64,000 nucleotides of DNA from Iphione sp. A-MEVVRFRX5 (GCA_976226885.1 OZ320319.1:29884001-29948000), one strand, 5' to 3'. Shown: positions 4,207 to 64,000, counted from the stretch's first letter. The notes: generated by a model not told the origin, from the letters alone. A program made the numbers and translations.

Positions 4207-4362
4207 NNNNNNNNNNNNNNNNNNNNNNNNNNNNNNNNNNNNNNNNNNNNNNNNNNNNNNNNNNNNNNNNNNNNNNNNNNNNNNNNNNNNNNNNNNNNNN
4301 NNNNNNNNNNNNNNNNNNNNNNNNNNNNNNNNNNNNNNNNNNNNNNNNNNNNNNNNNNNNNN
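4207..4362. other. assembly gap (156 N)
   Basis: Run of N bases. Confidence 1.
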
Positions 4363-40700: not shown

Positions 40701-43700
40701 TCTACCTTCTTATTGTTTTAGGAGTCGTCATACAACATTTTTTTTATCAAAGGTTCCAAATAGGACAGGTGCAGATGCTTTTGTTCATGCAGTTTGTTCA
40801 ATCCTATTGCATCATGGCATGGGGATTTAGCTCAGTTGGTAAGAGTGCTGACTAGCACTGGTCCACTGTTGAGAGGTCACAGGTTTAATCCTAGGCCAGG
40901 GATTCCAGATAATGATCAGGCTGATATTACTGTAGCAACAACCCACAATGGTCCAAACTTAAACAAAGGCCCTTTGTGTATAGGATTCTGTGCCCTATAT
41001 ACAAAAATACCCCAAAAACCTGTTCAAAATAAGAGTAGGGACAACTCTACCTATTCTGGTCTCTCACTTTTCAACAATAGATGGTAGTATGCTACTCCAG
41101 GAGAACACGTAAGAACAGCTAAAATGATAGTGAAATACCTATTTCCTGGGTAAAGGTACAATGGAAGTGAAAATAAAATTGTACATAAAGGTCCTATGTT
41201 TGGCTGGGGTGAGACTATCTAGTAGAGATTTCTGAATTTTGTGTGATAGTGAAGGAAACCTCCTCCTAAAACGACTTCCCTGCTAGTAGATACTTTCACG
41301 ATATTGCCATGCACTTAATCGAGTATTTTTAACATGGTTAGACAACTAAATTCAAAAGATAAGATTTTCAGTTTGAAAAAAAAATCAAGAGTTTACAACA
41401 CATTTGTTTCACATGAATTATTTAGGTTTCTATCTGTTGGAAAAAGAGGGAATTTATTGACATTGGTGATATGAAATATCATACCTAAGTATGTACTTTA
41501 TGAACTTTGTTTATTTACATATATTCCCATTACTCATTTGTGTAGATTGAAAACCAACATTTGGCTTGGAATGCCAAATCGAAAATTGGTTCTCTAGATA
41601 ATGCTAAGCATAAAGCTGCCGGTGGACAAAAGAAGGTAACAGATATTACTCTTTTTAACATATGTTAGATACAGTGTGTGAAACTATCATGTCCATCCAC
41701 ATCGTACACCAAGGTGACTATTTGTGTGGTCCATAGTAATACAATGGTCTTTATTCTTTTTAGAAAGATGACACATAATGAATGGAGGCAAAACAGCTAA
41801 TGTATTTGTGACGATTATGTTGGCACTCCATGTAAACTTTGAGTTAAAAAAACGAAATGAAATTCCACGATCTTTTGGCCTGCTGTTCTTATTCATGTCA
41901 TTTTATGAGGCCAGATCACCCAGCACAAGACGCGATGGAAGGCCAGCTCCAAGGTTGGCTCATTGCAGAAGGCCGGTCACCTCCCGGGGGGAGGGGACAA
42001 GAAGGTACCATACCAGTGCCTGCAGCCTCTTACAATTGCTTTCCCAAGTATTAACGTTGAATTTCCAGAATCCGTCCCCTGCAAAGCCAAGACCTAGACC
42101 CTTGCCAGCGAGTGTTTCTAGGCCTTTTTTTCTCTCACAAACATCCTGTCGCATTATCACTACCCCGTTCAGAATGAATCTTTTTGAGAGCAGGCTTCCA
42201 CCTTTTATGTTAGAAAGTCCGAATAAGCAGGATAGTTATAAAGAAACGCACACAGCTGGTAACAGACATTTAAATCTAAGGCTCTTCAAGTTGAATGCTA
42301 CTAATTGACATAATTGCAACGGTGAGGGCATCGCAACACTCTAATTATGCAACTGGTGACTCTACTTTGTGGTCCGTATCTCCAGTTGGTTAGTATCATC
42401 TAATTATCCTTAATGGTAACAGAGCAACTCTTTTGAGCAAGGCGACATAATCTATCAAACCATCTGTGCTGATAAAAGGATCTGTTGAATAGGCCAGAAA
42501 TCTGCAACTGTTGTCTAGATATTGCAGTATTGTAACACGCCATATTTGATGATGATAGATATAGAGATCACGGTCAGGGATATGTCATTATCCCCTTGTA
42601 ATTTTCCCAAATGTGAATTTCGGTGTTTAAATACTAATGGTCTTTTCGTAGTCACCGTCCTTTCTCTTTTGAAAGCATTGGTGTACAAACCTACTAAACT
42701 TGTTCAGTTTAGCGTGTACCCTCTGTATTGAAGTTTGTTTTCAACACTGACACTCCTTGTTCGAATGCACACATCACTATGTTCAGCATTGACACCGATG
42801 TTCTTTGTGTCATCCACATTTTTGTTGCAACGTCGTGAGAGAGAACGTAGTAGTCAACTGGCTATGAAGAAAGTTATTTACACTTGTGGTTTCTAGGCAA
42901 TTGCCTTCGTGGTCAGCAAAAGATTGAAGCACAAGAAATTATCACCATGTACTCATAAGATTGAAGAGATATTTACTCTACAAGTGACTTTAACTTTGAT
43001 TGTGTAACGAACTCCGGACAGGAACACATAGATACATCTGGCTTATATTCATCAATCTTGGTTTGGTGACGGCGCCCCCTCCCCCACTTTGCCCTCCAGC
43101 ATGCCCTTTCGTGGTGTTATAATTGAGCAGTTTGATATCGTTTTAAATGGTTTGACTGACCGTCTCACCTCTTGTTTTTCTTTCTAATTCTCGAATCCGG
43201 TCCTTATCCGTCTTAAAATTAACATCGCTTTTCTGGTATTTTGTTCTCTTTGTCGATAATCTAGATTGAATCCCATAAAGTGACCTGGAAGGCCCAATCA
43301 AAAATCGGCTCTCTTGATAATGCAACGCATACACCGGGAGGCGGAGAAAAGAAGGTAATCTGTACGGGGCTCTCTAAAAAGCTAAACCATGTAAAGCTCG
43401 TAAAAAAGACAACGGCAAAATTGTATGTAGTGTCAGCTCCCAACTTTCTGTTATATTCCAGGATGATGACACGTGAACTGAAACCACTCAATTTTCATTC
43501 AGATGCTGACGATGTCACCAGCACTATGTTTCGAGAATTGAATTGTACTGAATGTTCATATTTAAAACAGGTCAAATTGAAATTAATCGAAAGGTACAAA
43601 AAGAAAAAAAAATACTGACTTCTGTAGTAAATAACATTATTAATTCAATCTTAACTTTATCTAACCTGATTAATCCACTCAGTACCAGAAAAATAGTTAA

Positions 43701-46700
43701 GTAATTTTGTGGTCAAACAATGAAAGAACGGCAGGATCAAACAGAGATATGTAAGCATTGAACAAAAACAGCAACAAACTCAGTGAAAAAAACTTTCCGA
43801 CATGTTTTTGCGCTTTACTTCGCAGGTCAGGCCGAAGAAAAGAAAATATGGTGCTTCGTATTTGTATTAAATATGCATCAACATAATGCTTTGTAGAACG
43901 GAAAGGAAATGTTCGTCTAATATGGTCTTATTTGTCAATCACCCACCTGCAGATTGAATCTCAGAAGTTGGCTTGGAATGTCCAGTCGAAAATCGGCTCA
44001 CTTGATAATGCAGCACACGTGGCAGGCGGTGGAGAGAAGAAGGTGTGATACTTTGTCAGTGTATAAAAGTGCATCTTATTCTAAAATTGACTGATTTCTG
44101 GAAGGAACAAGTTGTTGTCATTTTGTAGGTGCACTGTGAAGGAAATGAGAGTTCGTTACTGCTTCTTTCTCTTTGCAAACAGGAGCACGGATTGTGCTTC
44201 TCCATCCTCAAGCTTTTGCTATCTACTAATAGTAAGCTTATTTAGAGCAATATTTTTTGGGACCATGTGTAAGAATAAAAGTAAGAAATAAGATGATTGT
44301 AGGATAAGGGCTGTCCCCAAAGTATACTGACGTAATGAAAAGATTGTTAATTTCATGAAGCCTAATTATTTTGAGTTATTTTTATTCCTAGATCGAAAGC
44401 CACAAACTGAAATTCAGGGAGAAGGCTCAGGCTAAGGTCGGCTCGACAAAAAACATGACCCATCAGCCTGGTGGTGGAGAAAAGAAGGTAAGCAGAATGT
44501 TTTACATTATTTCAAAGTCTCATGCTCGTTCGCATTACGCTGTTAACACATGGCGTTGAAGACATAGTAAAAGGAGAGATAGAGAGAAGGTCACAATATG
44601 AGCGGTTTGATCCGTGTTGATTCATGATGAGAATGAGACAAATACAAAAGAACAAAATTTTCCATGAAACAAATGGAAAAGGGAAATTTGGAGTAGGTAT
44701 GTGTACCGCCAAACCCTAATTTTTATGCTGGGTCTCCATCTCCATCTGTGCATGTCTGGAAAATCAGCCGATTTTCTGGAAAAGCACAGAATCCAGAAAA
44801 AACCTGCACACATGGAAAGTAGGTCCAAGGCTAAATACCAAGGGCTCACACATCCAATGTGTTGTATTTCACATTTAAACCATGCCCCCACGAATTTGCA
44901 CTGGAGGCCTGACTACAGGTAACCTTTACTCGTCCATGCCTAAACAGCTGACGCTATGACAAGCAGTAAGACTAATGGTTCCATTTTATGTGAAAGTACA
45001 TTGTACGTGTCCGGGACAGGGCGTCCGACTATAGATGTACCCGAAACCACACATAGAGGTAGTAGAATAGGGACGTGTACTGGAAGGTGGAAATTTCAAA
45101 ATTTTTCTCATGATCAGTTTTCATAAGTGCTTCTCTGCTAACATTAAAAAATTATGAAAGTCATTTTTTGACATACTGCCCACGGACTAAATGCCCCCAG
45201 ATTCATGTGTAATTCTCTTTGATGCATATGTAATATAACATGCAGTATGTTTCTTCAACCAACGCCTTGAATCTAGAATGAGTCATTTTCCCTTGGGCTT
45301 TCGAACATGGAAATTTGAAGATATTTAATGCAATAAAAACAAGGTCCTTGCCTTCTGAAGATAGACAACTTCAGATATGTTGGTCATCAAAGTCAGAGTC
45401 TTGTTCGTGTTTCCAGCCTGTAATAATTGTAAATTTTACACATGCATCTACAGTAAATACTCAAAACTGACAAGCCTTGGTTCGAAGTAAAAGTGTCCAC
45501 ATTAAGGAGATCCCTCCAGTTTTTGATAATAAGTACTATGAATAGCAAAAGTATGATGCCGTTCTGGCCAAAGTTCCCCCATTCTAGCTATGTGCCCCAG
45601 TCGCAGGTTGGCTCAGTAAAGTTGCTCTACTGAATTCACACTGACGTTTTCCAACAGGTAATGACAGGTATTCTCAATTTGCTGGAGAGTGTTATATCCT
45701 GAGACGTTCTACTTATTTTCTTTCGGAACATTCAGTTTGCCTTTCCCGTCTTTATATACTTTCATTTTTTTACCCGGTGAAATGAACTAAATATAGATGT
45801 TCCTTTTGGATTTAATCATTCTTTTTATATACACGATTATGTGAACAGAGGTCCCTTTAAACCGCCAGGCGCTGATATAGGTGGTATTAAGGTGTTTAAT
45901 CCTAGTGGATACGACAAATCTGCATTAAATCACAGTTGGACATGGATTGATGCCAAGTTAATTTGAGTAAAGTGTCACCGTGAATAATCTGCTGCATGAG
46001 AACTTAGACCACAACTGAACTCTCGTCAATACGATTCTCACAATTAACAAGAATAGGCGTAGAAAAGACAAAACTACCCTTACCCAAACGCTATGTGGTA
46101 ATGAATTTTCAGGTATATTTCATAGGCAGGTTCAATGAACTACGGTCGATTCCTTTAGTTGGGTAATGTACATCATCCCAGTCGTCTATACGAGATTATT
46201 TTCCTTGGCTCTTAAGAGGCTTTTCTACACACATGGGCGTCATGTGTATTTTCCAACCTGTGCCAGCCTCATGGACGTGACCGCAGGAAAATTAAGCCTG
46301 TCAACACAGTTTGTAGCAACTGACCATATTTGGCACGAGGATCAGAGATTGTTCTTCGAGTTTACTACACCTAAGGATAGACAGACACTCAAGTTGACGT
46401 ACGTCTATCCGCCTGTTGGATTTAAACCACGCTCCACTTGATCACCCAGGAATAGATTTGACGATGCGTAGCTTCACATCGTGCCCAACCTTTATTCACT
46501 TGGCACCAAACCCTTTGCAGGTGTACGATAGACGGTATCGAATCTGGACAGTTTACTCAAACTGAACGAATCTTTCAAGCGCGTTACACACCTGTAACAA
46601 GTGCTGGAAAGGATCATTGATCACGGGCAGTTCGTGTATTGACATCGATAAAAACATAACGACATGTACATTTGTCAACTGTGATGAAAACGTTTTGGCA

Positions 46701-49700
46701 TACATCTATTTCTCATTGTCCTTAAAGGCTACTAAGAGGAGAAGAGGTCCAAGACGATATGGTTATATAGAGCCGATTATGCTCCATCTGTTGTTCTCAT
46801 GCAAATGCGATTGCATGAAGTTCGGCACACACCGCTAAACATGGGCTATTAGCCTCTCGAGGGGTTCTTGCTTAAGGACTACTGCTCAACATCGAACGTT
46901 AGCTTCACTACTGTATGCAATGGAGGAGGCAACAAGCCGGAAGGGTAATTGTAACAAAACCTGGACTAAGCTTGCCCTGCCTGTTGGTCTAAAACGGGAA
47001 GGCAACCTGCTACCGCTCCAGGAGAGGCTGTTCAAGCTCAATCAGCTTCAGTTGAGGAACCACGGCCGAAACAAGAGGTTTACTGCCTTTCACGAGGACG
47101 GCAGCTCTGTGGCGACGACCCGGCCGCAGGCCTCCGACCAGTGCTGAAGGCAAAGAGACTGTCGTAGCTTAAATAGTTAGCGATGGTGGAGGTGATACCG
47201 GGTCCTCTCTGGCGATTTGTCGCGCACATGTAGCGGCGTGTAGTTGAGGCATTGCTACATGTGGTTCAGTGGAGAGCCTCTTGTATACAGAAGGACTATT
47301 AGTTCAGTCAAAGCCACACGCCCAAGTGTGCATCTACGGCTGGACCTAGCTGACTCAGGCTCCCCGGAGGCAAACTCCTTATCATGACCTTCTGAAGTGA
47401 GTATCAAATGATTCAAACCTGAAATAACACCTGGCATGTTCTAAATGATTAACGCCGATACAATAGATAGCAGCGCTTCTGGATCCATGCTAGAAGAAAA
47501 TTGTTGATAATGTAGCCCGGACTTACATCTGAAATGTGACCATATGGAAACGTATTCCAAACTAGCTCTCCTCCATGAATACTTGCTCCCGGTATGGTGT
47601 GGTGGGTTGTTTCTAATACGGCTTCTTACATGGACACTGAATACTAATACTAATCAGTCAAGAAATCAAGCATACCGACTTTTGACGTTTGAGCATCTTG
47701 TGAGCATCTCGCTTACCTTGCGCTGACCCCATGCTTGCTACATCAATTAACTACTGCTTGGTATCCAAACAACACTGATTATCTGTCACCTGCTGCACTT
47801 CTGGCCTGTGGTAAATTCGGCAAGAAGTATGGGCGACCTGTTACATATAAATGACAAATATTGCATGGTCAGAAATATGTGAGCATCTCTTTCAAAATGA
47901 GCGAGAGAGTAGCATCAGCACTCAGTTTGGACGAGTTCGAGGAGGATGACGATGAAGATGACCAGTTTGACTACCTGCGACGGAAGAGTTGGCCAAGACC
48001 ACCGGATTACAAACATGTAAGAGCTCGTATTGGGTCGCTCAAGGATGCCAGCAGGCCAAGGCCAGGAGGGAATGTTAAGATTGTCAACCGCAGGCTAAGT
48101 TGGTCAAACCAGTCCAAAGTGGGCTCGCTGGATAATCTGCAACACAGGCCTGGAGGAGGTGATAAACCTATTGAAAACCATGTTCTCGCCTGGAGATCTG
48201 AACCTAGGATCGATGCTTTCAATCCTGACTATGTGCCCCGAGGTGGGGATATATATGTTTTAGACGAAAAGCCCAGGTGGAAGGCTGAAGCCGCAGTGGA
48301 TGCGAGAAATGATGGCTACAGACCCTCTGGCGGCAATGTTGCCATATACGATGAGACGCCAAAGTGGAGAGCAGGACCGAAAGTTGAAAGTGTAAATCCC
48401 ACTTATCAAAGGAAAGGTGGAAGTGTAAGCATTATAGATGAAAAACCAAAATGGAAAGCACAGCCAAAGGTAGAAACGCTAAACGTCAGCTATGCCCCAA
48501 AGGGAGGAAATGTTGTGATAGCAGATCAGAAGCTACACTGGAGGGCAGAACAGAAAGTAGATTCCAATAATCATGTTTATAAACCTGGTGGGGGGAATGT
48601 TGAAATTATAAATGAAAAACCAAAATGGAAAGCACTACCAAAAATAGAATCGAGAACAACACATGAGCCTAAGGGTGGTAATATTGAAATATTTTCAGAA
48701 ACTCCCAGATGGAAAGCATTACCCAAAATTGATACTGGCTCGACAGATTATAAACCCAAAGGAGGTGGTGTACAAATATTCAATGAAAAACAAATGTGGA
48801 AAGCAGCCCCTAAAATAGATGCAGGAGACAAGAACTACCAGCCTAAAGGTGGTGATGTGAAAATATTTGAAGAGACACCAAGATGGAATGCTGCTCCAAA
48901 AGTAGACGCTGGCGATAGAAACTATAAACCTAAAAAACAGGAAGTTCAGATCTTTAATGAAAGTATCAACTGGAAAGCTTCCCCCAGGATTGATGTTGGC
49001 GACCCAAATTACAAGCCAAGAGGTGGTCATGTAGAAATATTCACAGAGACACCAAGATGGAATGCTGCTCCAAAAGTAGACGCTGGCGATAGAAACTACA
49101 AACCTAAAAAACAGGAAGTTCAGATCTTTAATGAAAGTATCAACTGGAAAGCTTCCCCTAGGATTGATGTTGGCGACCCAAATTACAAGCCAAGAGGTGG
49201 TAATGTAGAAATATTCACAGAGACGCCAAAGTGGAAGGCAGCTCCAAAAGTAGACGCTGCTAACAGGACTTACAATCCACGTGGTGGTGACGTACAAATT
49301 TTCACAGAGACTCCTAAATGGAAGGTAAATCCCAAAATTGATGTGGACAACAAGAATTATAAACCAGGAGGAGGTGATGTCAAGATATTTACTGAAGCAG
49401 CGAAATGGAATGCTGCTCCAAAGATTGACGTAGGAAGCAAAGATTATCAGCCTAAGAAAGGAGATGTCAGAATCTTCAGTGAAGCCCCCAAGTGGGAAGC
49501 GACTCCTAGAATTGATGCCGGAAGCAAGGACTATACCCCTAGAGGAGGTGATGTGAAAATCTTCACCGAGGCACCAAAGTGGAACGCTGCCCCCAAAATT
49601 GACATTGGCAACGCAGATTATCAACCCAAAAAAGCAGACGTGAAAATATTTAGTGAAACTCCAAAATGGCAAGCAAATCCTAAGATCGATGTGGGTAATA

Positions 49701-52700
49701 ATGACTATACACCCAGAGGCGGTGATGTGAAGATCTTCACTGAAAAATTAGGGTGGCAGGCGTCACCACGTATTGATGCAGGTGACAAGAACTACGAACC
49801 CAAACGAGGAACTGTGCAAATCTTCTCTGAAAAGCCCAAGTGGGAGGCCAGTCCCCGGGTTGATGCAGGTGACAAACAGTATGAACCACGAAGAAGTGAA
49901 GTGAAAATATTTTCGAAAACACCGAAATGGGAGGCATCGCCTCGGACAGATCATGGCGACAAGTCTTATAAACCAGGCGGTGGGGAAGTAAAAATATTCA
50001 GCGAAAAGCCCAAATGGACCGCCACTCCAAGAATAGATAATCATGCTGACTACAAGCCACCAGAAAGTGAGGTAAAAATATTCAGTGAAAACCCCAAATG
50101 GAACGCCCCGGCTAAAATACATTTTGGGGAAGACAGTTATCAACCCCAAGGTGGTAAGGTAGAAATATTTGATGAAAGACCCAACTGGAAAAAAGAAGCC
50201 AAAATTGGATCCCTAGATAATATTTCTCACGTCCCCGCGGGTGGAAACCGCAAGGTTGAATCACAAAAACTAAATTGGCAAGCATCTTCTAAAATTGGAT
50301 CATTGGACAATATTCACCATGTTTCCCAGGGTGGTAATATTGAAATTGCGAATGAGAAATTAGACTGGAAAAAACAATCTAAAATCAATTCATTCGAGAA
50401 TTTAAACCGGAAACCACCTGGCGGGATGAAGAGCATTGAAAGTCACAGACTCAGCTGGAACAAAGCATCCAAGATAGGTTCTACATTGGACAAGAAATAC
50501 AAGTCTAGAGGTGGAAATGTTGAAATAAAATCTGAACCTGTACATTGGAATGCCAAGTCGAAGGTAGGGTCTTTGCTCAATGTGAAATGGGTACCGCCAG
50601 GTGGTGAGAAGAGTATAAAATCCCAAAAGTTAAAATGGAAAAAACAGTCGAACGTTGGATCAACTGTTGACCCTAATTATAAACCCAGAGGGGGCAACGT
50701 AAAAATTACATCTGAGAAGCTTACCTGGAAGGTATCAGCAAAAGTCGGTTCTTTGGAGAATGTCTCTTGGGTTCCGACTTCAAGTCGTAGAACAATAGAA
50801 TCAACTAAACTTAACTGGAAAGCCGCGCCCAAGATTGACACGATTCTAGAACCATCCAAAATACCGACTGAAAGAAAAGTGCACATACCTTCCCAGCAGG
50901 TACAGTGGAAGAAGGAATCTAAAGTGGGTTCGCTGGATAACGTCAAATGGAACCCACCTGTTAGTAAGGTTAAGATACACAACCAGAAGCCACACTGGGA
51001 TAAACAGTCCAAGATCGGTTCCCTTGACAACGTTCTTCACAATCCAGGAGGAGGGGATGTGATACTTCCCAAGAATGCCGTTAACTGGCGGAAGCAGTCG
51101 AAGCTAGGCTCAACGCGGAGTGGTGAGTACATGCCAGGTTATAAGAAACTTAAGGGGTCGTTATGCCCAGAATGGCATCGTCGTTAAGAGTGAAAAGCCC
51201 GTATGGCAAAGTGGTTTGACGATCGATCCCCTCACCAACATCTCTTATGTATGTCTAGCAGCATGCCCGTAGCCAAGGGGATATCTTTTGGTCTTTATGG
51301 GAATAGAAAAAAAAGTTCCACCCCTGTGGTATCAGTGGTATCGTCTGATACCCCCATAAAACTTCCTGGCTACGGGCCTGAGCAAGTAATGCAAAGGTAA
51401 TTGACGAGCGGTTGTCCTGGAGAGGGGAATCCAACGTGAGATCACTTGAAAATGTATACTAAGATGATTTTAAAAATGTAGTTTTGTTCCCGGTGGAGGA
51501 AATGGTACAATGTTAAAAACACAGAACGAAGTGGACTGACAGGTCGGAGATGGACTCATTCCAGAACAAAAAATATTATGGAGAAGTCAGTTAAGAAATT
51601 GCAAAGCCATCATGGAAGAAAAGTATCGAATTTTGGATCCCTTGAAAACTCTCATCATATTGCTGAATGTTCCCTGATGTGGAAATGAAGGATAAAAACC
51701 TTAAATGGCATGCACAATTAAAAATAAGGTCCCTAGAAAACAAAAACCGGAAAGCCTAAGAAACCTAGTGTGACAATTGAAAGCAGAAAAGCAAAAAACT
51801 CACGTCCAGTATATGCCAGCATAAGACAACAGTACTTGAGAAACTGAAGTATAAACCGAGGGAAAAATAAAACTTCTCGGAATATGAGATGAGATGAGAA
51901 ACGAGTGATAACGAACGAGAGGGACCATGTCGATCGCAATAAGCCTCCTGCTCTGAATGAAGAATCTGTCCAGAATAAGAGTGAGAAGGCAGGGCATCCT
52001 CCACGACCTAGAACCTTGAGAAATACACGTATGATAAAAAAGGCTCTTAAAGACAGCAGGCTTAACGTGAACGATCAGTCTTAGGCGGAGGCGTAACAGT
52101 GGACCATGGGTGTTGAGGCAATACAGACCTCATTAAACCTTTTTCAAACAGGAAACAGACCACAGCCGGTTCTGTAGGGTCATAACAGGGCCACTATGAG
52201 CGTTGGAAGCGTGAAACCAATGCCTTTTCACAACGAGGCGCCACTGGTTCAACGAGTCGGGGAAACGAAACACGAAAGGGAAACAAGAACAATGGCAGAA
52301 AACGGCGCCATCGGAATAATTTCACTCACAGCCTGTAGGGGGAACCAATGTGTCTCCTACGACAAAGCACAGCCGGCGACTTCCACCGTGTGGAGGCACA
52401 GTCGGACAAGTATCCAGCGATCAACACAATTGATGATGCCATCCAACGGCTATCAAGACACCCCCCCAATTTGGTTAATCTGGCGCTGAAGGATATCGGC
52501 GCCAGCTTCAAACAGCTGGGGACATGCTTCCAACCCTTACTAGAGGAAAGGCCTATACCAGACCATTTTTTTCTGCTTATCGAACAATATATTCCGAGTG
52601 CTTAAAAATTCTTAGGTGAATGTAAACCTGAGGATAGTGAATATCTAAGTATGGAAACCATCATGACTAAGTTACAGAAATAGTGTAAAATGCTTTTGTA

Positions 52701-55700
52701 TATGTAGAAATTGAATTCATGCATAATTGCAAATTATGTAAATTATAAAGGAAAAAATATAATAGTTGTAGAGACACATTCTACTAGATTTTGTTACCAT
52801 ATTTCGCTCCTTAGGGTGACGCATTTACTGCATAAACCTACATGTGTAACGCAGAGACTACACTGGGATTTTCCTTGTACGTTCAGTCTCATGATCTTGT
52901 TATCAAAGATAATTTTCGTCATTTAAATACTTATCTCAACTTAAAATACGGGTTAAACCGAGAGCCTGTGTAAAATAAGTGTAATGAATGTATGCAGGGC
53001 TATTTGTGACTTAAATTTGTATCATAGATAGAACAATGCATGAACTTTTGACGTACTTGGTTGAAAATGCGCATGCAAGTTGTGATTCATCCCCCCGCTT
53101 TCTTTGGACTCGGACGAGATTTGGATCACTTTACCTGATTTTAAAGTTTAATTCAGGCAGAGCCAAGTTCTTTGTAGCATGTATACAATACGGACGTTAA
53201 TAACTCGGTCTAATCGTGTCCTGTTTGCACACCGGGGACCCTCATGTTGGTCCTTCGCACGTCCTTTACCTTTAATGGCCCTTGTTGAAGGAAGCACTGC
53301 ATATGTAATCCCTGCATGGCTTCTAGTAGATGACCAAAGGTAGTTCTCGAGAAGTGCTCGACGATCCTTTAATCAAATGTGTGCTGTAGGATGTGAGTAC
53401 GCCCGAAGGTGTTCTCTAAATACAACAACAAAAAAACAGCACAGAAATACAGCAATGACCATGCAACACATGCCCCCTTTGCTTTAAGTACTGCAATCGG
53501 ATGTTGAGCTATATCTCTGTCCCCTAAGAACGTTAATAAGATGGATGTTCATGTCTGTCTCGAAACAGTTAACAAGAGATTCAAGTAAAGTTAGTTTATA
53601 TGACTATACTGACTATGCATATTTTGCCACAGTTACACGTTCTTACGTACTGTTATGTAGACATCGCATTGCTGCTTCGTAAAGAGTTTGCATTTGGGCA
53701 GTGTTACTATTGTGCCGAAGGATCATTCGCACTGAAATAAACAAAGGTTAGCATTTAGCCAACGGACACGTAGTCGTCAGTCAACACTGTCCTAATCTGT
53801 ACCTATACACCAAACATACAATCATTTACAGAAAGGCCCTGCCCCATAACTGCTCTATGCTGGACCTATTATTTCTTATGCAACACTTGTAGAGCAATAC
53901 ACCCTACAGAGACACACAACATGACCACACCACCCTGGAGCTTTTTGGTGTGAGAACATGCTCGTGCTTTTGTAAGCCTGGCCCTTAATGAATACAAAGG
54001 TATACATGGCGTCTAATTAGGAGCATAAGTGTAAGGTTTTTTTTTCTGAAGGAAACGAGTATGCGCACATACTGGCGAATTCGTAAGGTCTTTGCCGAGG
54101 TCTAGATATAGGTGTGTGCCCCGGAGTGTACGTGTGTAAGTAGACGCTCATGTTTCACCAGTAGGGGCCCCGTCTATTCACATTGGCCCTCGTCCAGGGT
54201 ACACAGTATTACGGTCGGGACACCGCTGACCACCCCCTCATTACTGGGAGGTCGACCACGTACGAGACGTTGGGTGTCTTGCAGCATGGCCTCGCCTCCA
54301 GTGGAGGACGGACCCGACCAGCACCTTTCAAGACGGACTTGGCGGCCCACTCACATCCTCAGAGGGACAAGACGTACAGCCTGGAACTGTCCATATTGGT
54401 CTTGTTATAAGACACATAGTCTCTGGCATGCTGAGAAGCTTTGCACAATCCGTTTGGTGAAGGTGTTAATGGTTGAACTGAATATGTAGAACTCCGATCG
54501 CTTTGTTTCGCAACACACATTCATGTAGCCCTACATAATGGATGGCATACCTAACCACCATCTACTTTGAAGGAAACTAAGTTGAAATTGATGAGCCATG
54601 GAGGAAGACTCAGTTTCGGTCAGTTTAGAGCCGATCCCTCTTTCGTCACTGGGGCCAAATTTATCCGGACACAAGATGTCTGAAGAAAGCGCAGGCAACG
54701 AGGAGGACAGGGACAGCGATGTGAAATCCATGTCCTTTCAAGCTGAAGATGTAGATACAACGCCCGAGGGACATATTGACGCAGAATCGACAAACACGTT
54801 GACAGACTCTCTTCCTGGCGAATCTACCGCACCTGCTTTGGATACTGGAGTCTTTGCTGATCAAAATAAGGATAACAATTCCCCGATTGAAATATCGTCT
54901 GCCGCGTTGGATCCGCCAATGGAGATCCAGGAAGTTGTTTGCTCAGACGGTGTTCATGGATCGCCAGTTCCCATTAGTAGTAAAGTGATCAACTCATCTA
55001 CAGATATGGCACAAGACGTCCCACAAGAATGTCTTCATGAGGATGCAGACGACGGATTATTGCACGGTAAAGAGGAATCACCAGTCGTAATACCAGAGGA
55101 TGCGAATAGCACTACGACTACGGAAACAGTCACAGCAAATATGGACGACACTGGGGGCGCCCGTGAAACGGGTGGTATAAGCAAAGGCGATCATCAAACG
55201 GAGGAAGCGCATGTCGCCTGTCCTAACAATAGCGGTGACGAAGAAAATAGCGTGTGTTTGAATTTAGAAAGAAAAGACGATCTACTTGAGTTAGAACCAG
55301 AGAGCAAGCAAGATCAAGGGTCAGAAGGGAACTTGAATGGGTTTAATCTCCGTAAAGCAGTTGCACTGGAGAATCTATCCGACAATGAGTCAGATTTAGA
55401 GTCAGAGTCAAATTCTAATGTTGATGACTCCATTGACGATTTGCTTCCTCCTCTAGATAATGAGACACCAAACGACACCACTACTGTAAAAGACACCGAG
55501 AGTAATCCAGGGCAAGCTGAAAATAACAATGTCAGTGCAGATGAAGTGCAGTCAAGCATCGAGCCGACGGAAAGGACTGTAAACACTGAGATCCAAAATG
55601 ATAACCAAGTGCTGACTGATGGAGGTGATATGCAGGAAGGATCGGACAGCTCAGATGAACCAGAATTTGAGTGTGAGTCATTCCGGCATCTGAACAGTCT

Positions 55701-58700
55701 TCTAAAGGACGAAGAGGATACGAATGAGTATTTTGCTGCAGGCGCTCATGTTGATCCTAATTATCTTGGAGATGCTTGTGAGATACCAATGGTTATTGAC
55801 TATAAGCCACAATTTGGTGAAGGTCCTCTACTGGGGGACAGTAGGTATAGTCCGGATGGTTTAGCCAGGAAACCAGTTAGGTCGTTACGTACAGACAACG
55901 ATAAGCTTGCCAATAGGTCTACCCCAGAATCCAACCTAACAGTCCATGCACAACAATATAACAAGCCTAAGGTGAATCCGTTGGTCAACGGGAGTTCTAA
56001 ATTAAAAATGAATAGTTTGCTGACAGCCGATAAGAATTTGGACAAGCATGAGGAGGCTAAACCCGGTTCTTTAGAGAATTTAGAGCATTTGCCAACGAAA
56101 TCAAATAAAAAGATATTTAACAGCCTTCCTAAGTGGAAAAAACAATCAAAAATCGCTTCCTTGGAGAATATTGGACATGAACCCCCCCAAAGTAAGGTGA
56201 AAATCTTTGATCAACCCATATCCTGGAGTGCCCAGTCGCGCCTTGGTTCTCTGGATAATCTTTCACACGTCCCAGGAGGTGGTCATGTGGAACTTCCCAG
56301 ACAGGAAGTAAAGTGGAGGTCTGAGCCCAAGGTAGGCTCACTCGAAACACTTAGGAAAATGAAGGATATTGAGAGGAGTTTGCCTGAAAAGATGGATTCC
56401 ATCGCTGAGGAAGACGAAGTACATTTGGGAGATAGTTCAAATGATCAGCGATCTGGTGGACCATACAATGTGAACGTACCAAAGTATGTCCTGAACAAAA
56501 GAAACAGAACCAAGAAACCCTTAAGGTTTGTGGGTGTCTTCCACGAACGGTTGAACTGGAAAGGGCAGGCTAAGGTTGGTTCTTTAGATAACATACACTA
56601 TAAGCCTGGCGGAGGAGACGTCATTGTTGAGGAGGAGGAGGAAAACCAGAAAGTGGAGGCCAAGTCTACAGTAGGCTCGCTGGATAACATCGACCATGTG
56701 CCAGGTGGAGGTACCGTACAGTTACCCCGGAACAAAGTCAATTGGAATAAGAAGAGCAAGGTTGGGTCGCTACGGAGTATGTTCGAAATAAACGAAGACA
56801 AGAAGGTAGTTCTCCAAAAGTTTGGGATTAACTGGGATGCTTTCCCTGAGCATCTGCGCCCACGACGTGAGGCCTGTGATATCGATATACAGACCAGCTC
56901 AGGACTGCGGAAATCTGAGCAGAGTGTAGTCTCCAAGACTGACATAGATGACCGTGCTGTGTTCAATCCTGTAGACCAGTGGTTCAAAGACTACAAACAG
57001 AAACGTGTTTCTCGGCGAGAGATGTTTAAGGCTATCGATAAGGAGCTGGAAGATTCTGTTCGGTTTTCCTCCCATTCGAAACATTTAGGACTCGGTGACG
57101 CGCGAATCAGTGGTAGGAGGAACAGGAAGGTAAGACCCCTGCGAGCTGAAGGTGGTCCGGATGAGCAGACGTTGAGCAGGTATACTCGACCTGAGACCCC
57201 AGTCGTCGAGCGGTCCGACGTCCAGGTACAAGGACATGGTTCACCTGAGCTCGCCAAGAATCTCAGAGGGAGCGACACCACATCAACCGTGCCCAGTGAA
57301 CCTTCAACAATTGAACCTCCGTCACTGCATTCAATAACAGAGGAAAAACCTGACTTGGCCGTCTCGGGACTGAAAGCTCCATACTTGGTGCGAGCCAAAA
57401 TGGATGGCGGGGACAGCACCCAAGCTGTAGGTAATGACCTTGTGACTATGCCAAGTAAAAGGGCCAAGACCCACACAAAGCTAGTGCCAGTTGAGATGCC
57501 CGAGGCTGCGCGAGACCAGCTGGGTCTGGACAGTGCCAAAAAGAAACCCAAAGCAAAGATTCGCTCGATTGGTAACACGGACATCATTCCTGGGATCAAC
57601 GACCACCTTCGTATTAATAACGAGAAACTTCGCTGGAAGGCTAAGCCCAAGGTGGGGTCGTTGGACAATGTTAACCACAGTCCCGGTGGAGGTTTCAAGG
57701 CCGTATACAACGAAGGGCTGTCCTGGAATGCCGAGTCCAAGGTGGACGCCGGCTCGGGCCCTCGTGTAGTGCGGGAGGGAACATATGACGTTATAAAGAC
57801 CAGCCCTGAGAAGTAGACTATGGGTGCTTATCATAACCCTGCTTTCATATGGACTTTTCAACGTAGTGCGTGTATACATGCAAATCTAGTTTGGGATTAT
57901 TTCGTTCATCTGTTTTTTTTTCTAGGAGAGTTGGTAATAATTTATCAAGGAAACATTGCAAGTATCAAACGTCGAACCAACCATATCGAGACCCAAAGCA
58001 TTTGGCATAAATGGAAATGAATAGGAACACCATGGTGTTAGTAAAAAAAAGTATCAGTTATTTGTCCACCCTGCATATTTTCCTCGTAGTTTCATAAGGA
58101 AACAACAAAATACAGTACTTGCTGGCATATTGATCCTCGTGTGAGGCACTGCTCGTATACAATACCTTTGTGTGCTTCGTGTCGATTTTCTTCTTTATCC
58201 GATACTCATAGATAATAAATTCGCCAATGATTATTTGCATTGTTTGATTAGCTTTTTCTTGTCCTAATTTACAGTTTTATTGGTTTTGAACTTTGGATAA
58301 TATTCATATCGTGACAGGAAGGTTTTCATTACAGTGTACGTAAAGAAATTGTTGAATCAAAACTGAAAAGCTTCGGCTGACTATTGTTATGAAAAGGGAA
58401 ATCGTCTCAATATAATTAAATAATGTCGCACAAGAGATGAGATTTCCTGACATCCCATGCCTGGACGTGGGACAAATAGAACTCATTTTCTAAGAGAGTC
58501 TTTAGCAGCTCTCTCCATGTTTAGACAGTTTAGACATTTAGACAATCTTATTTCTGAGGAGGATAAGGACAAATTTTGTACAGGGCTCAGATCTTTTGGA
58601 ATGCAATACATGGGATGATAAGTGTGTATTTAATATATCCTTTTTTAAACACATGCTCTGAGTAATAATCAGAGATTTAAAAGTTGGCAACATATTAGGA

Positions 58701-61700: not shown

Positions 61701-63237
61701 ATAAAATGGTCGCATAGAATTTATAAGGTATTTCATTTTGTAACTTGTAGTTTAGCCATATGTTTCAGGACATGTTCCCGCTTATGAAAACAAAAACAAA
61801 AAACATGTTAGGTATAAGGATAAAAGCTGAACTCAAGTTCCTTTGGCTGTTTTCCATATACATTGTACATGTACATGTCAACGTGCACATTGAGATATAT
61901 CTGTTATATCTAGAACAACCCAAGACTATATACTTTGTATCAGGTTTCTACTAATGTCTCTATAGATATCGCACATGTGTCCTTAGCTTTGAAGGCTATC
62001 CAGATTGGATGGATTGTCCCGCTTACAGATCCGTGAAAGCCATAGATTTAAACCAACCTGGACATTTAGTGGTTATCTGATAGTCAACCGGGGTCAATTA
62101 GTGTCATGCAAATCCATCTGTTCCAGACTAAATGGATATGTCTCTGTGTGCATGATAATGTATACAATGGAACACCGCCCTAATATCTTGCTACTTGGAT
62201 GCCATAGACCCTGTTTATCATTATGAGTTTAACTGTGATGAAGAAACGTCGGACTTGCAACATATGAGCAACAATGCTACCTTCAAGAGAAGAGGGTAGA
62301 CTGGCCTTTTTCTCAGCGACCAGCGAGGAGTTTAGTTTCTCTCAGGCATGCCCGTTACACCTACATTTACTTTAAAGGTTGTGAGGCGCTTTAGTATAAC
62401 TAGTATTCACATAGTATATCATTGTGCCTATATTTCCTCATAAATTATTGAACAGACAAGTCTGCGTCAAATAGAAACGGTTTTAGAATGCACGTGTAGG
62501 TGCTGCTTCAGTTTTGATTTAAAAGATGTCACAGATGGACAAATATTTGAGCCCTGATTTCTATACCTTGTCCTTTAACCGTTCTCTAGCTGGGGTGCGT
62601 CAAGTTGTGGACTATGGGGCTTATGACCTCTTGAACATATTTTTTCCAGCATACACTCGTTCTTTATGGTTAATCTGTGCCCTCCTCCCCACCTCCCCGG
62701 TGTAATTAGGCGGTCTTTCCATGTGTACAACTTTTTGTGATGTGGGGTTGGAGTGTAGGAAGTCCTAACACCCCGCCAGTGGTGACACTGCGGAACATAC
62801 ATTGTATGTACATATGGACAGGGTGCGGGTAGATTTACGCGTGTACTGATCCGCACTGTCCTGCACGATCCTGCAGATGAATCCATAGTTGTCTGGTAGG
62901 TTCATCTATCAGTTCATTATTTGGTTTCACCTACGGTCCTTGCTCCGCGTCCGGAGCTGGAGAAATCGTGCACATGGAAAGACAGCCTAGCCGACCTGGA
63001 TCAACCCTGCACTGCCATGCCAGCAACTCAACTTCAGTTGAATGTACAGTAGTTCTGCAGTCTTCAATTAACTGGTCATTTTGTCATATTTTCCAGATTG
63101 AGAGCCACAAGCTGCACTTCCGTGAGAAGGCCCAAGCCCGGACGAATCATGGAACTCGCACTACCGGCTCTGACTCGATCGGCTCCGGGGAGGCTGCCGA
63201 GTCCATCAGCTCGGCAGACGGGGCAGCAAGCACATGA
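21717..63237 (+). CDS. MAPT: tau/MAP2/MAP4-family microtubule-associated protein (host gene, multi-exon; 5' end unresolved)
   Basis: 13 exons with AG/GT boundaries and matching phases total 2204 nt, which with the 1 nt from the upstream exon gives 735 codons including the stop. The product has nine K/R-x-G-S...(P)GGG repeats and a terminal [19 protein letters not shown] matching vertebrate tau IETHKLTFRENAKAKTDHG. The symbol denotes family membership, not one-to-one orthology. Confidence 0.9.
24171..24214 (+). CDS. MAPT: host tau 44-nt linker exon (D)[14 protein letters not shown] (phase 1-0)
   Basis: Acceptor TTTTCTTTCACCAG|, donor CAAG|GTAAGG. It bridges the phase-1 donor at 22709 to the downstream phase-0 acceptors. 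Confidence 0.75.
28966..29214 (+). CDS. candidate alternative exon of the tau host ([22 protein letters not shown]...), boundaries uncertain
   Basis: C-rich acceptor ...CCCGCATGCAG| in phase 0; 37 of the first 47 codons end in G/C; phase-0 donor GGACAG|GTGCGA at 29215. It could instead start at ATG 28960 or run to TGA 29280. Confidence 0.4.
31245..31511 (+). CDS. candidate alternative first coding exon, Lys/Arg-rich ([15 protein letters not shown]...TKPRR)
   Basis: ACAATGG start and a strongly basic reading frame; phase-0 donor CGG|GTAAGA at 31512 is compatible with the phase-0 acceptors at 32020 and 35087. Confidence 0.45.
32020..32685 (+). CDS. candidate alternative acidic exon of the tau host (phase 0-0, 666 nt)
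   Basis: 233-codon open frame, D/E/S/T-rich and disorder-like. Acceptor TCCTCTTTGTTACATGTTAAG|, phase-0 donor ACA|GTAAGA at 32686. It could also initiate at ATG 31996. Confidence 0.6.
35087..35258 (+). CDS. MAPT: host tau 'pre-repeat' exon [57 protein letters not shown] (phase 0-1)
   Basis: Acceptor TTACTCTCAAATAG|, perfect donor |GTAAGT at 35259, and a tau-like [10 protein letters not shown] motif. Confidence 0.85.
36166..36501. mobile_element. PIF/Harbinger (Tourist-like) MITE, 336 bp, copy 1
   Basis: TIRs ...AAAATAGGTGTGTTTCTG / CAGAAACACATCTATTTTTTTTGCC with a TAA target duplication at 36163-65 and 36502-04. Collinear with 60817-61152. Confidence 0.85.
37208..37326 (+). CDS. MAPT: host tau R1-like exon (P)[39 protein letters not shown] (phase 1-0)
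   Basis: Acceptor TCTGTCCTGCTTGTGTAG|, donor CAA|GTAAGT; canonical SKIGS..N..H.PGGG. Confidence 0.92.
37604..37702 (+). CDS. MAPT: host tau R2-like exon [33 protein letters not shown] (99 nt, phase 0-0)
   Basis: Acceptor TTTTATCGTAG|, donor AAG|GTAATT; aligns with human [30 protein letters not shown]. Confidence 0.93.
38292..38381 (+). CDS. MAPT: host tau 90-nt repeat exon 1: [30 protein letters not shown]
   Basis: AACAG| acceptor, AAG|GTATCA donor, phase 0-0. Confidence 0.9.
40322..40411 (+). CDS. MAPT: host tau 90-nt repeat exon 2: [30 protein letters not shown]
   Basis: TTCATGTAG| acceptor, AAG|GTAACA donor, phase 0-0. Confidence 0.92.
40821..41116 (+). mobile_element. tRNA-headed SINE-like repeat (not a functional tRNA)
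   Basis: Head GGGGATTTAGCTCAGTTGGTAAGAG contains an A-box; degenerate B-box GGTTTAATCC; the body is shared with 12564-12806 on the opposite strand. No intact acceptor stem seen. Confidence 0.7.
41546..41635 (+). CDS. MAPT: host tau 90-nt repeat exon 3: [30 protein letters not shown]
   Basis: TTTGTGTAG| acceptor, AAG|GTAACA donor, phase 0-0. Confidence 0.9.
41915..42004 (+). CDS. MAPT: host tau 90-nt repeat exon 4: [30 protein letters not shown]
   Basis: GCCAG| acceptor (weak pyrimidine tract), AAG|GTACCA donor, phase 0-0; the most divergent of the six. Confidence 0.82.
43265..43354 (+). CDS. MAPT: host tau 90-nt repeat exon 5: [30 protein letters not shown]
   Basis: AATCTAG| acceptor, AAG|GTAATC donor, phase 0-0. 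Confidence 0.92.
43953..44042 (+). CDS. MAPT: host tau 90-nt repeat exon 6: [30 protein letters not shown]
   Basis: CCCACCTGCAG| acceptor, AAG|GTGTGA donor, phase 0-0. Confidence 0.9.
44392..44487 (+). CDS. MAPT: host tau 96-nt repeat exon: [32 protein letters not shown]
   Basis: TTTTTATTCCTAG| acceptor, AAG|GTAAGC donor, phase 0-0. Confidence 0.92.
47846..47851 (+). promoter_or_regulatory. candidate TATA box for nested ORF-A
   Basis: TATAAA about 50 nt upstream of the CAAAATG start at 47897. Motif only. Confidence 0.3.
47897..51187 (+). CDS. nested intronless ORF-A: about 36 tandem tau-like repeats (1096 aa from ATG 47897)
   Basis: Uninterrupted 3.3-kb frame. Short acidic N-terminus, then an R1-like [28 protein letters not shown], then 35 Trp-anchored 28-30-aa units. 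Nine units carry KxGS. In-frame stop upstream at 47852-54. Confidence 0.88.
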   Translation: MSERVASALSLDEFEEDDDEDDQFDYLRRKSWPRPPDYKHVRARIGSLKDASRPRPGGNVKIVNRRLSWSNQSKVGSLDNLQHRPGGGDKPIENHVLAWRSEPRIDAFNPDYVPRGGDIYVLDEKPRWKAEAAVDARNDGYRPSGGNVAIYDETPKWRAGPKVESVNPTYQRKGGSVSIIDEKPKWKAQPKVETLNVSYAPKGGNVVIADQKLHWRAEQKVDSNNHVYKPGGGNVEIINEKPKWKALPKIESRTTHEPKGGNIEIFSETPRWKALPKIDTGSTDYKPKGGGVQIFNEKQMWKAAPKIDAGDKNYQPKGGDVKIFEETPRWNAAPKVDAGDRNYKPKKQEVQIFNESINWKASPRIDVGDPNYKPRGGHVEIFTETPRWNAAPKVDAGDRNYKPKKQEVQIFNESINWKASPRIDVGDPNYKPRGGNVEIFTETPKWKAAPKVDAANRTYNPRGGDVQIFTETPKWKVNPKIDVDNKNYKPGGGDVKIFTEAAKWNAAPKIDVGSKDYQPKKGDVRIFSEAPKWEATPRIDAGSKDYTPRGGDVKIFTEAPKWNAAPKIDIGNADYQPKKADVKIFSETPKWQANPKIDVGNNDYTPRGGDVKIFTEKLGWQASPRIDAGDKNYEPKRGTVQIFSEKPKWEASPRVDAGDKQYEPRRSEVKIFSKTPKWEASPRTDHGDKSYKPGGGEVKIFSEKPKWTATPRIDNHADYKPPESEVKIFSENPKWNAPAKIHFGEDSYQPQGGKVEIFDERPNWKKEAKIGSLDNISHVPAGGNRKVESQKLNWQASSKIGSLDNIHHVSQGGNIEIANEKLDWKKQSKINSFENLNRKPPGGMKSIESHRLSWNKASKIGSTLDKKYKSRGGNVEIKSEPVHWNAKSKVGSLLNVKWVPPGGEKSIKSQKLKWKKQSNVGSTVDPNYKPRGGNVKITSEKLTWKVSAKVGSLENVSWVPTSSRRTIESTKLNWKAAPKIDTILEPSKIPTERKVHIPSQQVQWKKESKVGSLDNVKWNPPVSKVKIHNQKPHWDKQSKIGSLDNVLHNPGGGDVILPKNAVNWRKQSKLGSTRSGEYMPGYKKLKGSLCPEWHRR
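48871..49218 (+). repeat. near-identical 174-bp (two-repeat, 58-codon) tandem duplication inside ORF-A
   Basis: 48871-49044 and 49045-49218 differ at only a few positions (e.g. TAT/TAC, CCC/CCT, CAT/AAT). Confidence 0.92.
51150..51800 (+). pseudogene. frameshifted, decayed tau-like repeats downstream of ORF-A
   Basis: Fragments in shifting frames: [83 protein letters not shown] (51676-51759) and [10 protein letters not shown]. Confidence 0.65.
54598..57816 (+). CDS. nested intronless ORF-B: acidic N-terminal domain plus about 10 tau-like repeats in three clusters (1072 aa)
   Basis: GCCATGG Kozak start with an in-frame TGA 6 nt upstream. Repeats such as [32 protein letters not shown] and [16 protein letters not shown] fall at about 56044-56350, 56540-56775 and 57540-57765. 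Confidence 0.88.
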   Translation: MEEDSVSVSLEPIPLSSLGPNLSGHKMSEESAGNEEDRDSDVKSMSFQAEDVDTTPEGHIDAESTNTLTDSLPGESTAPALDTGVFADQNKDNNSPIEISSAALDPPMEIQEVVCSDGVHGSPVPISSKVINSSTDMAQDVPQECLHEDADDGLLHGKEESPVVIPEDANSTTTTETVTANMDDTGGARETGGISKGDHQTEEAHVACPNNSGDEENSVCLNLERKDDLLELEPESKQDQGSEGNLNGFNLRKAVALENLSDNESDLESESNSNVDDSIDDLLPPLDNETPNDTTTVKDTESNPGQAENNNVSADEVQSSIEPTERTVNTEIQNDNQVLTDGGDMQEGSDSSDEPEFECESFRHLNSLLKDEEDTNEYFAAGAHVDPNYLGDACEIPMVIDYKPQFGEGPLLGDSRYSPDGLARKPVRSLRTDNDKLANRSTPESNLTVHAQQYNKPKVNPLVNGSSKLKMNSLLTADKNLDKHEEAKPGSLENLEHLPTKSNKKIFNSLPKWKKQSKIASLENIGHEPPQSKVKIFDQPISWSAQSRLGSLDNLSHVPGGGHVELPRQEVKWRSEPKVGSLETLRKMKDIERSLPEKMDSIAEEDEVHLGDSSNDQRSGGPYNVNVPKYVLNKRNRTKKPLRFVGVFHERLNWKGQAKVGSLDNIHYKPGGGDVIVEEEEENQKVEAKSTVGSLDNIDHVPGGGTVQLPRNKVNWNKKSKVGSLRSMFEINEDKKVVLQKFGINWDAFPEHLRPRREACDIDIQTSSGLRKSEQSVVSKTDIDDRAVFNPVDQWFKDYKQKRVSRREMFKAIDKELEDSVRFSSHSKHLGLGDARISGRRNRKVRPLRAEGGPDEQTLSRYTRPETPVVERSDVQVQGHGSPELAKNLRGSDTTSTVPSEPSTIEPPSLHSITEEKPDLAVSGLKAPYLVRAKMDGGDSTQAVGNDLVTMPSKRAKTHTKLVPVEMPEAARDQLGLDSAKKKPKAKIRSIGNTDIIPGINDHLRINNEKLRWKAKPKVGSLDNVNHSPGGGFKAVYNEGLSWNAESKVDAGSGPRVVREGTYDVIKTSPEK
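58214..58219 (+). terminator. candidate polyadenylation signal for ORF-B
   Basis: AATAAA about 400 nt after the stop, followed by T-rich sequence. Motif only. Confidence 0.3.
59450..60410 (-). mobile_element. degenerate 5'-truncated non-LTR retrotransposon (CR1/L2-like) RT remnant
   Basis: Minus-strand fragments in shifting frames: [11 protein letters not shown] (~60340-60365), [30 protein letters not shown] and [14 protein letters not shown]. Confidence 0.8.
60817..61152. mobile_element. PIF/Harbinger (Tourist-like) MITE, 336 bp, copy 2
   Basis: TIRs GGCAAAAAAAATAGGTGTGTTTCTGGTAA / TTACCAGAAACACCTATGTTTTTGGCC with a TTA target duplication at 60814-16 and 61153-55. Homologous to 36166-36501. 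Confidence 0.85.
63097..63237 (+). CDS. MAPT: host tau terminal exon [46 protein letters not shown]
   Basis: Acceptor TTGTCATATTTTCCAG| in phase 0; the N-terminal part matches vertebrate MAPT exon 13 (IETHKLTFRENAKAKTDHG). Confidence 0.9.
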   Translation: MESHKLHFREKAQARTNHGTRTTGSDSIGSGEAAESISSADGAAST

Positions 63238-64000
63238 ATGACTTCACCATGAAACGGACGGCGCGGACAGCATCGAAGGACAGTGGTGAACGGAGAAGCA
63301 AGGGTCACGAAAGAGCTGAATGTAACCCGCCAGCTCGCAAAAGTGCTAGCCGACATCAATCTTTGTTTACAATATGACTTCATAAAGATGTTTCCATATA
63401 GTATTGCATCCGACATTGCTGGGGATCATTCACGCCCCGATCCGTCGTATTATGTTTTTTTAGCTATCCTGCTATGGTTAGTCATTGACACCCTGACAAA
63501 GAAAAACAGTTATACAGGGGAACCTAACATCAAGCTCTGTCAAAGGAGAGGAATGATACATACTCAATGTTGTGAGCATTCGGTGGTTAGGAATTTAGGG
63601 ATATCTAAACGATGTAAATGCTTATGAATTACTCCTGAAATTCGAATGCCTCCTTGGTGTGTAGTTCCCGTTAGTGTGTTAATTTACGCCATCTAAACAT
63701 AGTCCACAATATCAAGGCTTTCTCTCCTAGTTCCATAAAAATAGTGTAAATCTTTCCATGAGGCATATACATGTATGCATATGACGAAGCTCTTTACGGA
63801 CAGAAAGTAAACCTGTTGAAATACTTCCAAGTCTTTTTGAGGCAGCTCAGTTAAATACCATTCGACTTATATTCCTTCCACTTTTTACAGTCTACACAAA
63901 TTGTATTATAGCCACCCGAATCCCTCTCTTGCCATGACTCGAGTCCTTCCCTAAATATGCCGCGAGTAACAATAGACATAGAATGTACTTCCTTTCAGAA

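Follow-up and report, generated by a model that had tools for sequence, protein, structure and literature searches.

A 36-unit tau-like repeat array in a probable gene nested within the last intron of a tau-like gene of Iphione sp.

Work on the tau family has dealt almost entirely with proteins of 3-5 repeats that carry long projection domains. What, then, should be made of a single open reading frame (ORF) that encodes 36 such repeats and almost nothing else? We analysed a window of 64,000 nt from Iphione sp. A-MEVVRFRX5 (GCA_976226885.1 OZ320319.1:29884001-29948000; positions are counted from the first letter of the window) that holds such a frame, here called ORF-A, on the same strand as a larger tau-like gene, here called the host. 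On balance, the sequence favours ORF-A as a functional protein-coding gene with its own start codon and a long lattice-binding product, nested in the last intron of the host. A projection-less protein of 36-43 repeats that is under selection bears on the dependence of affinity, dwell time and lattice stabilisation on the number of repeats, and the locus is an unusual conserved gene-within-gene arrangement.

A single reading frame of tau-type repeats

From base composition, the chance that the 1096 codons of ORF-A (Table 1) would remain open was ~1e-30, and the other five frames over the same interval held 27-116 stops. Unit boundaries were set by splitting the protein at its regularly spaced conserved tryptophans (Trp), which gave 36 tandem units of 28-37 amino acids (aa) each. 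Cutting in this way reproduced the anatomy proposed earlier from the sequence alone (hereafter the sequence-only reading), namely one R1-like unit, one canonical unit, 23 variant units and eleven 30-aa units, the last incomplete. The R1-type unit started with 'PDxKxVRxRIGS'. Just 31 acidic residues preceded it, so the array is fronted by neither a projection domain nor a proline-rich region. At the other end ORF-A stopped four residues past unit 36, with no R' repeat or C-terminal tail, and the single ORF crossed every unit boundary instead of following a one-repeat-per-exon structure.

ORF-A consisted of imperfect tandem repeats of ~31 aa with a P-G-G-G-type motif, and the Pfam model PF00418 matched it at 274.7 bits (cut-off 27; E 1.5e-83), with eight stretches individually significant. 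The scan, together with the 31-aa head, agreed with the sequence-only reading of a tau-like repeat protein almost without a projection domain. The orthologue described below scored 619 bits over 24 stretches. Two further Pfam assignments on ORF-A, DUF3024 and HPTransfase, were discarded as repeat-composition noise with no significant individual stretch.

Two types of unit made up the array. The variant unit retained the Lys-Ile pair, an aromatic residue at the tau His position, P-x-G-G (conserved in the canonical consensus as well) and the V-x-I-F strand. The KXGS motif, which is the MARK/PAR-1 site, was found in none of the 23 variant units, where K-I-D-x stood in place of K-I-G-S. ORF-A held nine true KXGS motifs, all within canonical units and eight of them in the C-terminal canonical array (50186..51172). 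Net charge per 100 aa was +3.2 in the variant core against +11 in the canonical part; the orthologue had the same charge partition (2.7 against 10.5), and the KXGS partition was likewise conserved. When profiles of the two unit types were aligned with hhalign, they matched at 96.2% probability (E 2.5e-9). The variant region alone also matched the tau chains 7pqc, 8g54 and 6cvn in the PDB (E 1e-6) in repeat register, 6cvn being a model of microtubule-bound tau. Judged by these profile comparisons, the variant units of the core are genuine tau repeats.

Among 341 related proteins retrieved, the number of units per protein peaked at 5 and reached a maximum of 13. The highest published count that we found was that of molluscan tau-likes, with 7-10 repeats (PMC8985376). 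By sequence, ORF-A has ~3x as many repeats as any relative among those retrieved or in the literature found, and the earlier view that it lies far above 3-5 holds against this wider set.

Tandem Repeats Finder detected repetition at the DNA level within ORF-A only at 48752-49602. Comparison of the 29-aa units gave a mean proportion of synonymous differences (pS) of 0.80, meaning that synonymous sites were saturated, and a mean proportion of non-synonymous differences (pN) of 0.32. Because the units are at synonymous saturation and little DNA-level repeat is left, the array is ancient and not the product of recent slippage or expansion or of an assembly artefact. The only young internal duplication was a 174-bp double unit, in which units 11-12 (48884-49057) and 13-14 (49058-49231) differed by four synonymous and two non-synonymous changes. 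Two antisense ORFs lay opposite the array, of 317 aa (48719-49672, - strand) and 128 aa (49763-50149, - strand), most likely as a by-product of the A-rich, stop-poor repeat codons of the + strand (AT skew 0.30).

Conservation of the locus and the 5' end of ORF-A

Protein searches with ORF-A returned repeat-level matches only, the best at 244 bits and none over more than one third of the query; the best-scoring match in the exhaustive protein search was P0121. An orthologue was reached instead through the contig of P0136, an orthologue of a second tau-repeat frame in the same host intron (ORF-B), followed by a 5.6 kb walk through a small neighbouring ORF. Orthologues of ORF-A had been called as genes on ENA contigs, yet protein searches missed them even with 1113 of their own residues as the query. 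Since existing orthologues went unreturned, 'no close homologue' results are unreliable for highly repetitive queries, and highly repetitive proteins may be missing from protein collections.

The orthologue, on contig L009, comprised one canonical, 19 variant and 23 canonical units (43 detected) and a basic tail of ~190 aa; like ORF-A, it had a short head before the first unit. Unit-level alignment of the two was collinear from the first variant unit through unit 35, and six adjacent collinear units showed 56% identity with a pS of 0.83 (saturated) and a pN of 0.27. Contig L010, from the same sample as L009, carried a ~6% diverged copy of the whole region and is either a haplotig or derived from a very close relative. 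Over 1504 codons the two copies of the orthologue differed at 112 non-synonymous and 167 synonymous positions (dS 0.199, dN 0.032, omega 0.16; binomial p 2e-44 against neutrality), a pattern that places the orthologue clearly under purifying selection. The dN/dS check suggested in the sequence-only reading therefore gave a value that was not near 1, as measured in the orthologue pair.

The window and the orthologue contigs (L006, L009 and L010) had a common gene order, namely host repeat exons, small ORF, ORF-A, ORF-B and host last exon, shared between genomes that are saturated at synonymous sites. On L010, host one-repeat exons lay upstream of the ORF-A orthologue, and on L006 and L009 ORF-B was found downstream of ORF-A and upstream of the host last exon. 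A third contig had a 670-aa ORF at an equal distance upstream of P0125, another ORF-B orthologue. Given a saturated, collinear orthologue in the same place and a dN/dS of 0.16, ORF-A is not an artefact and most probably not a dead copy.

Since the terminal exon of the host was found at 63097-63238, ORF-A lies inside the last host intron (44488-63096). Is it then a gene of its own, or a part of the host? An in-frame stop preceded the Met both in ORF-A and, at a distance of 23 codons, in its orthologue, and the stretches between the stop and the Met encoded unrelated residues in the two. Conservation started with the Met and continued through ~10 aa, a D/E run and an L[RH]R..SW motif. Every AG between the upstream stop and the Met was preceded by at most 55% pyrimidines in 20 nt, compared with the T-rich acceptors of the host. 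As Met, head and upstream stop are conserved and no good acceptor was present, ORF-A most likely encodes its own protein instead of a giant host exon, and the conserved features make translation from its own Met likely. A TATA-like TATAAAT at 47846 was absent from the orthologue and was given no weight. An AATAAA was located downstream of ORF-A at 51866 and, along with the evidence on Met, upstream stop and acceptors, lends indirect support to a possible separate transcript.

Some features of the locus speak against an independent gene. ORF-A is on the host strand within the last host intron, and the second genome is alike. The checked host exons are phase 0-0, and the AG at 47871-47872 would open an in-frame phase-0 exon. 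A conserved small ORF 750 bp upstream also means that the transcript may be more complex than that of a simple intronless gene. Large alternative exons are a known feature of tau and MAP2 genes, and ORF-A could on this model be a giant alternative (terminal) exon, giving a 'big' host isoform in which the host projection domain and ~9 repeats are followed by 36 more. We regard this as unlikely. None of the AGs near the 5' end has a pyrimidine tract, the upstream in-frame stop is present in both species, and conservation begins only at the Met and acidic head. In ORF-A the repeats also start afresh from an R1-type unit, in the manner of a microtubule-binding domain, instead of continuing an array, and all-repeat tau-like single ORFs occur elsewhere without tau repeat exons within 10 kb. 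On the 3' side, a GTGAGT at 51123 is in phase 1, incompatible with the phase-0 last exon of the host; tried as a donor, it found only one nearby acceptor, which would delete 48 nt in frame and leave the array not rescued.

Possible binding mode and the eroded 3' end

In tau, each repeat lies extended on the crest of the protofilament, centred on alpha-tubulin, where it spans the intra- and inter-dimer interfaces and contacts three monomers (PMC6692637). S262 of the KXGS motif hydrogen-bonds E434 of alpha-tubulin, and phosphorylation by MARK lowers affinity (PMC6692637). The same structure corrects the sequence-only reading on one point, since the repeat that had been matched to one tubulin subunit corresponds to one dimer (~8 nm) (PMC6692637).

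By analogy, ORF-A is best read as a very long binder that spans the lattice. Its product, from which projection domain and proline-rich region have been lost, would amount to little else than a single long microtubule-binding domain. As in tau, the chain would run in extended form along one protofilament, each repeat occupying one alpha-beta tubulin dimer. Its 36 units could staple ~36 consecutive dimers, or ~0.3 µm, and the 43-unit orthologue ~0.35 µm; a unit of 29 aa would still be long enough for 8 nm at ~2.8 Å per residue. Very high avidity would be expected from 36 tandem repeats. Basic canonical units with KXGS, two at the N-terminal and eleven at the C-terminal end, would flank the 23-unit variant core, so that the core may be insensitive to MARK-type detachment while the canonical ends stay regulatable. 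Microtubule binding, stoichiometry, regulation and independent transcription are all put forward here on the strength of sequence and of the parallel with tau. The luminal, axonemal or sperm setting suggested in the sequence-only reading is speculative. The array bears on whether repeats bind in tandem at 8-nm register and on the role of repeats without the KXGS switch. A long, homogeneous natural array is possibly favourable for cryo-electron microscopy, in which tau density is otherwise smeared by register averaging.

Nebulin binds actin through helical modules. It is a very long chain without projections, built from short modules in tandem that each correspond to one subunit repeat of a cytoskeletal polymer. 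The sequences are unrelated to ORF-A, and the comparison serves only as a working analogy in which a ruler role for ORF-A is hypothetical. Taken further than we would readily defend, ORF-A and its 43-unit orthologue might form a 'microtubule nebulin', a projection-less, kinase-insensitive staple or length/stability ruler on a single protofilament (0.3-0.35 µm) of very stable arrays such as those of cilia, sperm or long neurites, co-regulated with the host tau-like gene perhaps through the small ORF.

The low net charge of the variant units is a difficulty for a staple, since the tubulin surface is acidic and their hold on it might be weaker. It also suits a different model, in which the variant core is a regular solenoid, or binds soluble tubulin, the lumen or another filament. 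In addition to being nearly charge-neutral, the variant units differ from tau at two serines that hydrogen-bond alpha-tubulin, and every 29 aa contain five positions at which a hydrophobic or aromatic residue is conserved. AlphaFold2 (AF2) also modelled short beta strands that recur regularly. The confidence of that AF2 model of ten variant units was nevertheless very low (mean predicted local distance difference test score, pLDDT, 35; predicted template modelling score, pTM, 0.28), though from a shallow alignment, and a folded solenoid was rejected on this pLDDT. Because AF2 found no confident fold, an extended or disordered binder is consistent with the prediction. A search of the ESM Atlas with the variant core returned nothing. 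Variant units, moreover, align in register with the microtubule-bound tau repeats of 6cvn and are embedded between canonical ones in one chain. Host and mollusc tau-likes place similar units, exactly one in each, directly N-terminal to their canonical array. A variant core that does something other than staple the lattice is, on this evidence, distinctly improbable.

At the 3' end, unit 36 has a ~28-nt insertion and a frameshift, ORF-A stops within it, and the repeat pattern briefly goes on in another frame. The ~600 bp that follow (51188..51800) contain repeat relics that are the counterpart of canonical units intact in the orthologue. Judged from this comparison, the lineage of the window lost ~12 canonical units, which amount to the last third of the ancestral array at its 3' end, together with the basic tail; the gene itself could be starting to disappear. 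The shortened array, with units past 36 and the basic tail gone, the disrupted unit 36 with its stop-riddled sequel, and the intronless structure expected of a retrocopy are also what a decaying duplicate or retrocopy would show, one turning into a pseudogene whose protein is no longer made or needed. The relics carry 10-16 stops per 237 codons and the 1096 codons upstream none, which points to an old truncation with the remainder kept open; motif positions are kept relative to a saturated orthologue, the young duplication has four synonymous to two non-synonymous changes, and the orthologue is clearly under purifying selection, so that decay of the whole gene is very unlikely. Since 1096 clean codons stand against stop-riddled relics, the retained part of ORF-A appears to be still under selection, the direct measure of which comes from the orthologue pair.

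Relatives of the array and neighbouring features

Like vertebrate tau, MAP2 and MAP4, ORF-A has K-[IV]-G-S ... P-G-G-G ... V-x-I ... K-L repeats, a first unit of R1 type with a 'PDxKxV[KR]x[KR]IGS' start and a basic canonical array with KXGS, and its variant core, the only segment modelled, lacks a confident fold. It departs from them (3-5 units) in its 36 units, in lacking projection domain, proline-rich region and C-terminal tail, and in that two thirds of its units are the 29-aa variant without the KXGS serine; a Trp occupies the inter-repeat position. The frame is uninterrupted, in contrast to the host gene with its one-repeat exons. Expanded tau-likes of invertebrates, both lophotrochozoan and deuterostome, resemble ORF-A in having more repeats than vertebrates: oyster has 10 (PMC8985376), sea urchin 12-13 (P0001/P0008), Lingula 11 (P0122), and the abalone protein P0002 reads 'vCCCCCCCCC' (v, variant; C, canonical). 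Unlike ORF-A, they have long projection domains, and none exceeds 13 units or has more than one variant unit.

Also similar in architecture are short all-repeat single ORFs on unannotated eukaryotic contigs, namely P0121/P0246 (445 aa, 'CCCvCCCCCCC'), P0133, P0131 and P0123. They share with ORF-A an almost absent N-terminal domain, Trp-delimited units and the single ORF; P0121/P0246, P0133 and P0131 have a variant unit among canonical ones, and P0123 is canonical only. In contrast to ORF-A, they comprise 8-11 units with at most one variant, and those checked had no tau repeat exons within 10 kb.

Proteins with tandem K-[IV]-D/E-x(3-5)-[YH]-x-P-x-G-G-x-V-x-I-F units, as in ORF-A, were also found. 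Variant-only arrays occurred in the rotifer Brachionus (P0255, 12 units; P0128, 7 units) and in a metagenomic eukaryote (P0005, 8 units), and the chytrid Irineochytrium encoded P0009 ('CvvvvvvvvC', eight variant units) with ankyrin repeats alongside. These have far fewer units than ORF-A and other flanking domains, and what they share with it is the type of unit. The tandem variant-type arrays listed outside lophotrochozoans were P0255, P0128, P0005, P0179, P0209/P0212, P0009 and P0267 (Rhizophagus); P0209 and P0212 had a conserved C-terminal motif, ..KIEVIDMKELSLLSK... Most variant-array proteins scored under the PF00418 gathering threshold, and the spread of the tau-repeat family is probably underestimated, as variant arrays fall below it. 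A variant tau repeat largely invisible at the Pfam threshold thus occurs in tandem arrays of lophotrochozoans, rotifers and chytrid fungi. In vertebrate R' pseudorepeats, the variant profile slightly outscored the canonical one in 52/52 cases, at non-significant bit scores; with the direction uniform and the scores non-significant, the variant unit as the full-length form of R' was retained as a lead only. What is new here is the ~3x repeat number, the lack of a projection domain, the amplified KXGS-less repeat type and the conserved nested position; the superfamily itself is known.

Table 1. Features of the ORF-A locus in the window and of its counterparts on other contigs.
Feature	Position	Strand	Details
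Host variant-type 'pre-repeat' exon	35087-35258	+	Single; precedes the canonical exons
Host one-repeat exons, ~9	37183-44487	+	Eight with checked boundaries are phase 0-0
Last one-repeat exon of host	44392..44487	+	Followed by the last host intron (44488-63096)
Conserved small ORF, 75 aa	46920..47147	+	750 bp upstream of ORF-A
In-frame TGA, 15 codons upstream of ATG	47852..47854	+	Stop-to-ATG stretch not conserved; no pyrimidine-rich acceptor
ORF-A coding sequence	47897..51187	+	1096 codons + TAA; first ATG (47897) in open frame 47861..51187
Acidic N-terminal head, 31 aa	47897..47989	+	Net charge -8; conserved in orthologue
R1-like unit, 37 aa	47990..48100	+	Trp splitting
Canonical 30-aa unit	48101..48190	+	Trp splitting
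23 variant units, 28-29 aa	48191..50185	+	Consensus WxAxPKIDxGxxxYxPKGGxVxIFxEKPK
Young duplication, 174-bp double unit	48884..49231	+	Units 11-12 and 13-14; the only young internal duplication
11 canonical units, ~30 aa	50186..51172	+	WKKxSKxGSLxNxxxVPxGGxxxIExxKLx; last degenerate
Unit 36, degenerate, disrupted	51086..51172	+	Last canonical unit of ORF-A
Decayed array continuation past stop	51188..51800	+	Repeat relics in all three frames; 10-16 stops per frame (237 codons)
ORF-B, 1072-aa single-ORF tau-repeat paralogue	54598..57816	+	PF00418 E 3e-49; same host intron
Host last exon, R'-like	63097..63238	+	Ends in stop; end of tau-type protein
ORF-A orthologue	L009:4464-8978		1504 codons as called; eukaryotic ATG probably 4530
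Second copy of orthologue	L010:11166-15683		1505 codons, intact
Small ORF counterparts, 75-78 aa	L009:3296-3532; L010:10001-10237		0.75-1 kb upstream of ORF-A orthologues

A profile built from the units of ORF-A located ten more repeat-encoding pieces upstream on the + strand, from 35120 to 44487 and mostly with one repeat per exon, which belong to the host. The checked exons had T-rich acceptors and GT donors. The parent tau-like gene therefore houses three same-strand ORFs (the small ORF, ORF-A and ORF-B) in its last intron, an arrangement that is conserved. In ORF-B the N-terminal region was acidic and the tau repeats fell into three clusters; its orthologues were P0136 (44% identity over 503 aa), P0243, P0125 and P0123. 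Over 49 aa, the small ORF shared 67% identity with its counterparts (tblastx E 1e-20), and the omega of ~0.28 between L009 and L010 derives from only six differences. Pfam and the ESM Atlas gave no match for the small ORF, and the only relative in the databases was its L010 copy. Possible identities include a very small nested gene and an upstream ORF, with a conserved peptide, on the ORF-A mRNA. The ratio of observed to expected CpG was raised at 46001-47000, preceding the small ORF. The window as a whole was eukaryotic DNA of ~40% GC, with an RVT_1 reverse-transcriptase fragment of a retroelement at 1603-2118 (+) and a 156-base run of N at 4207-4362.

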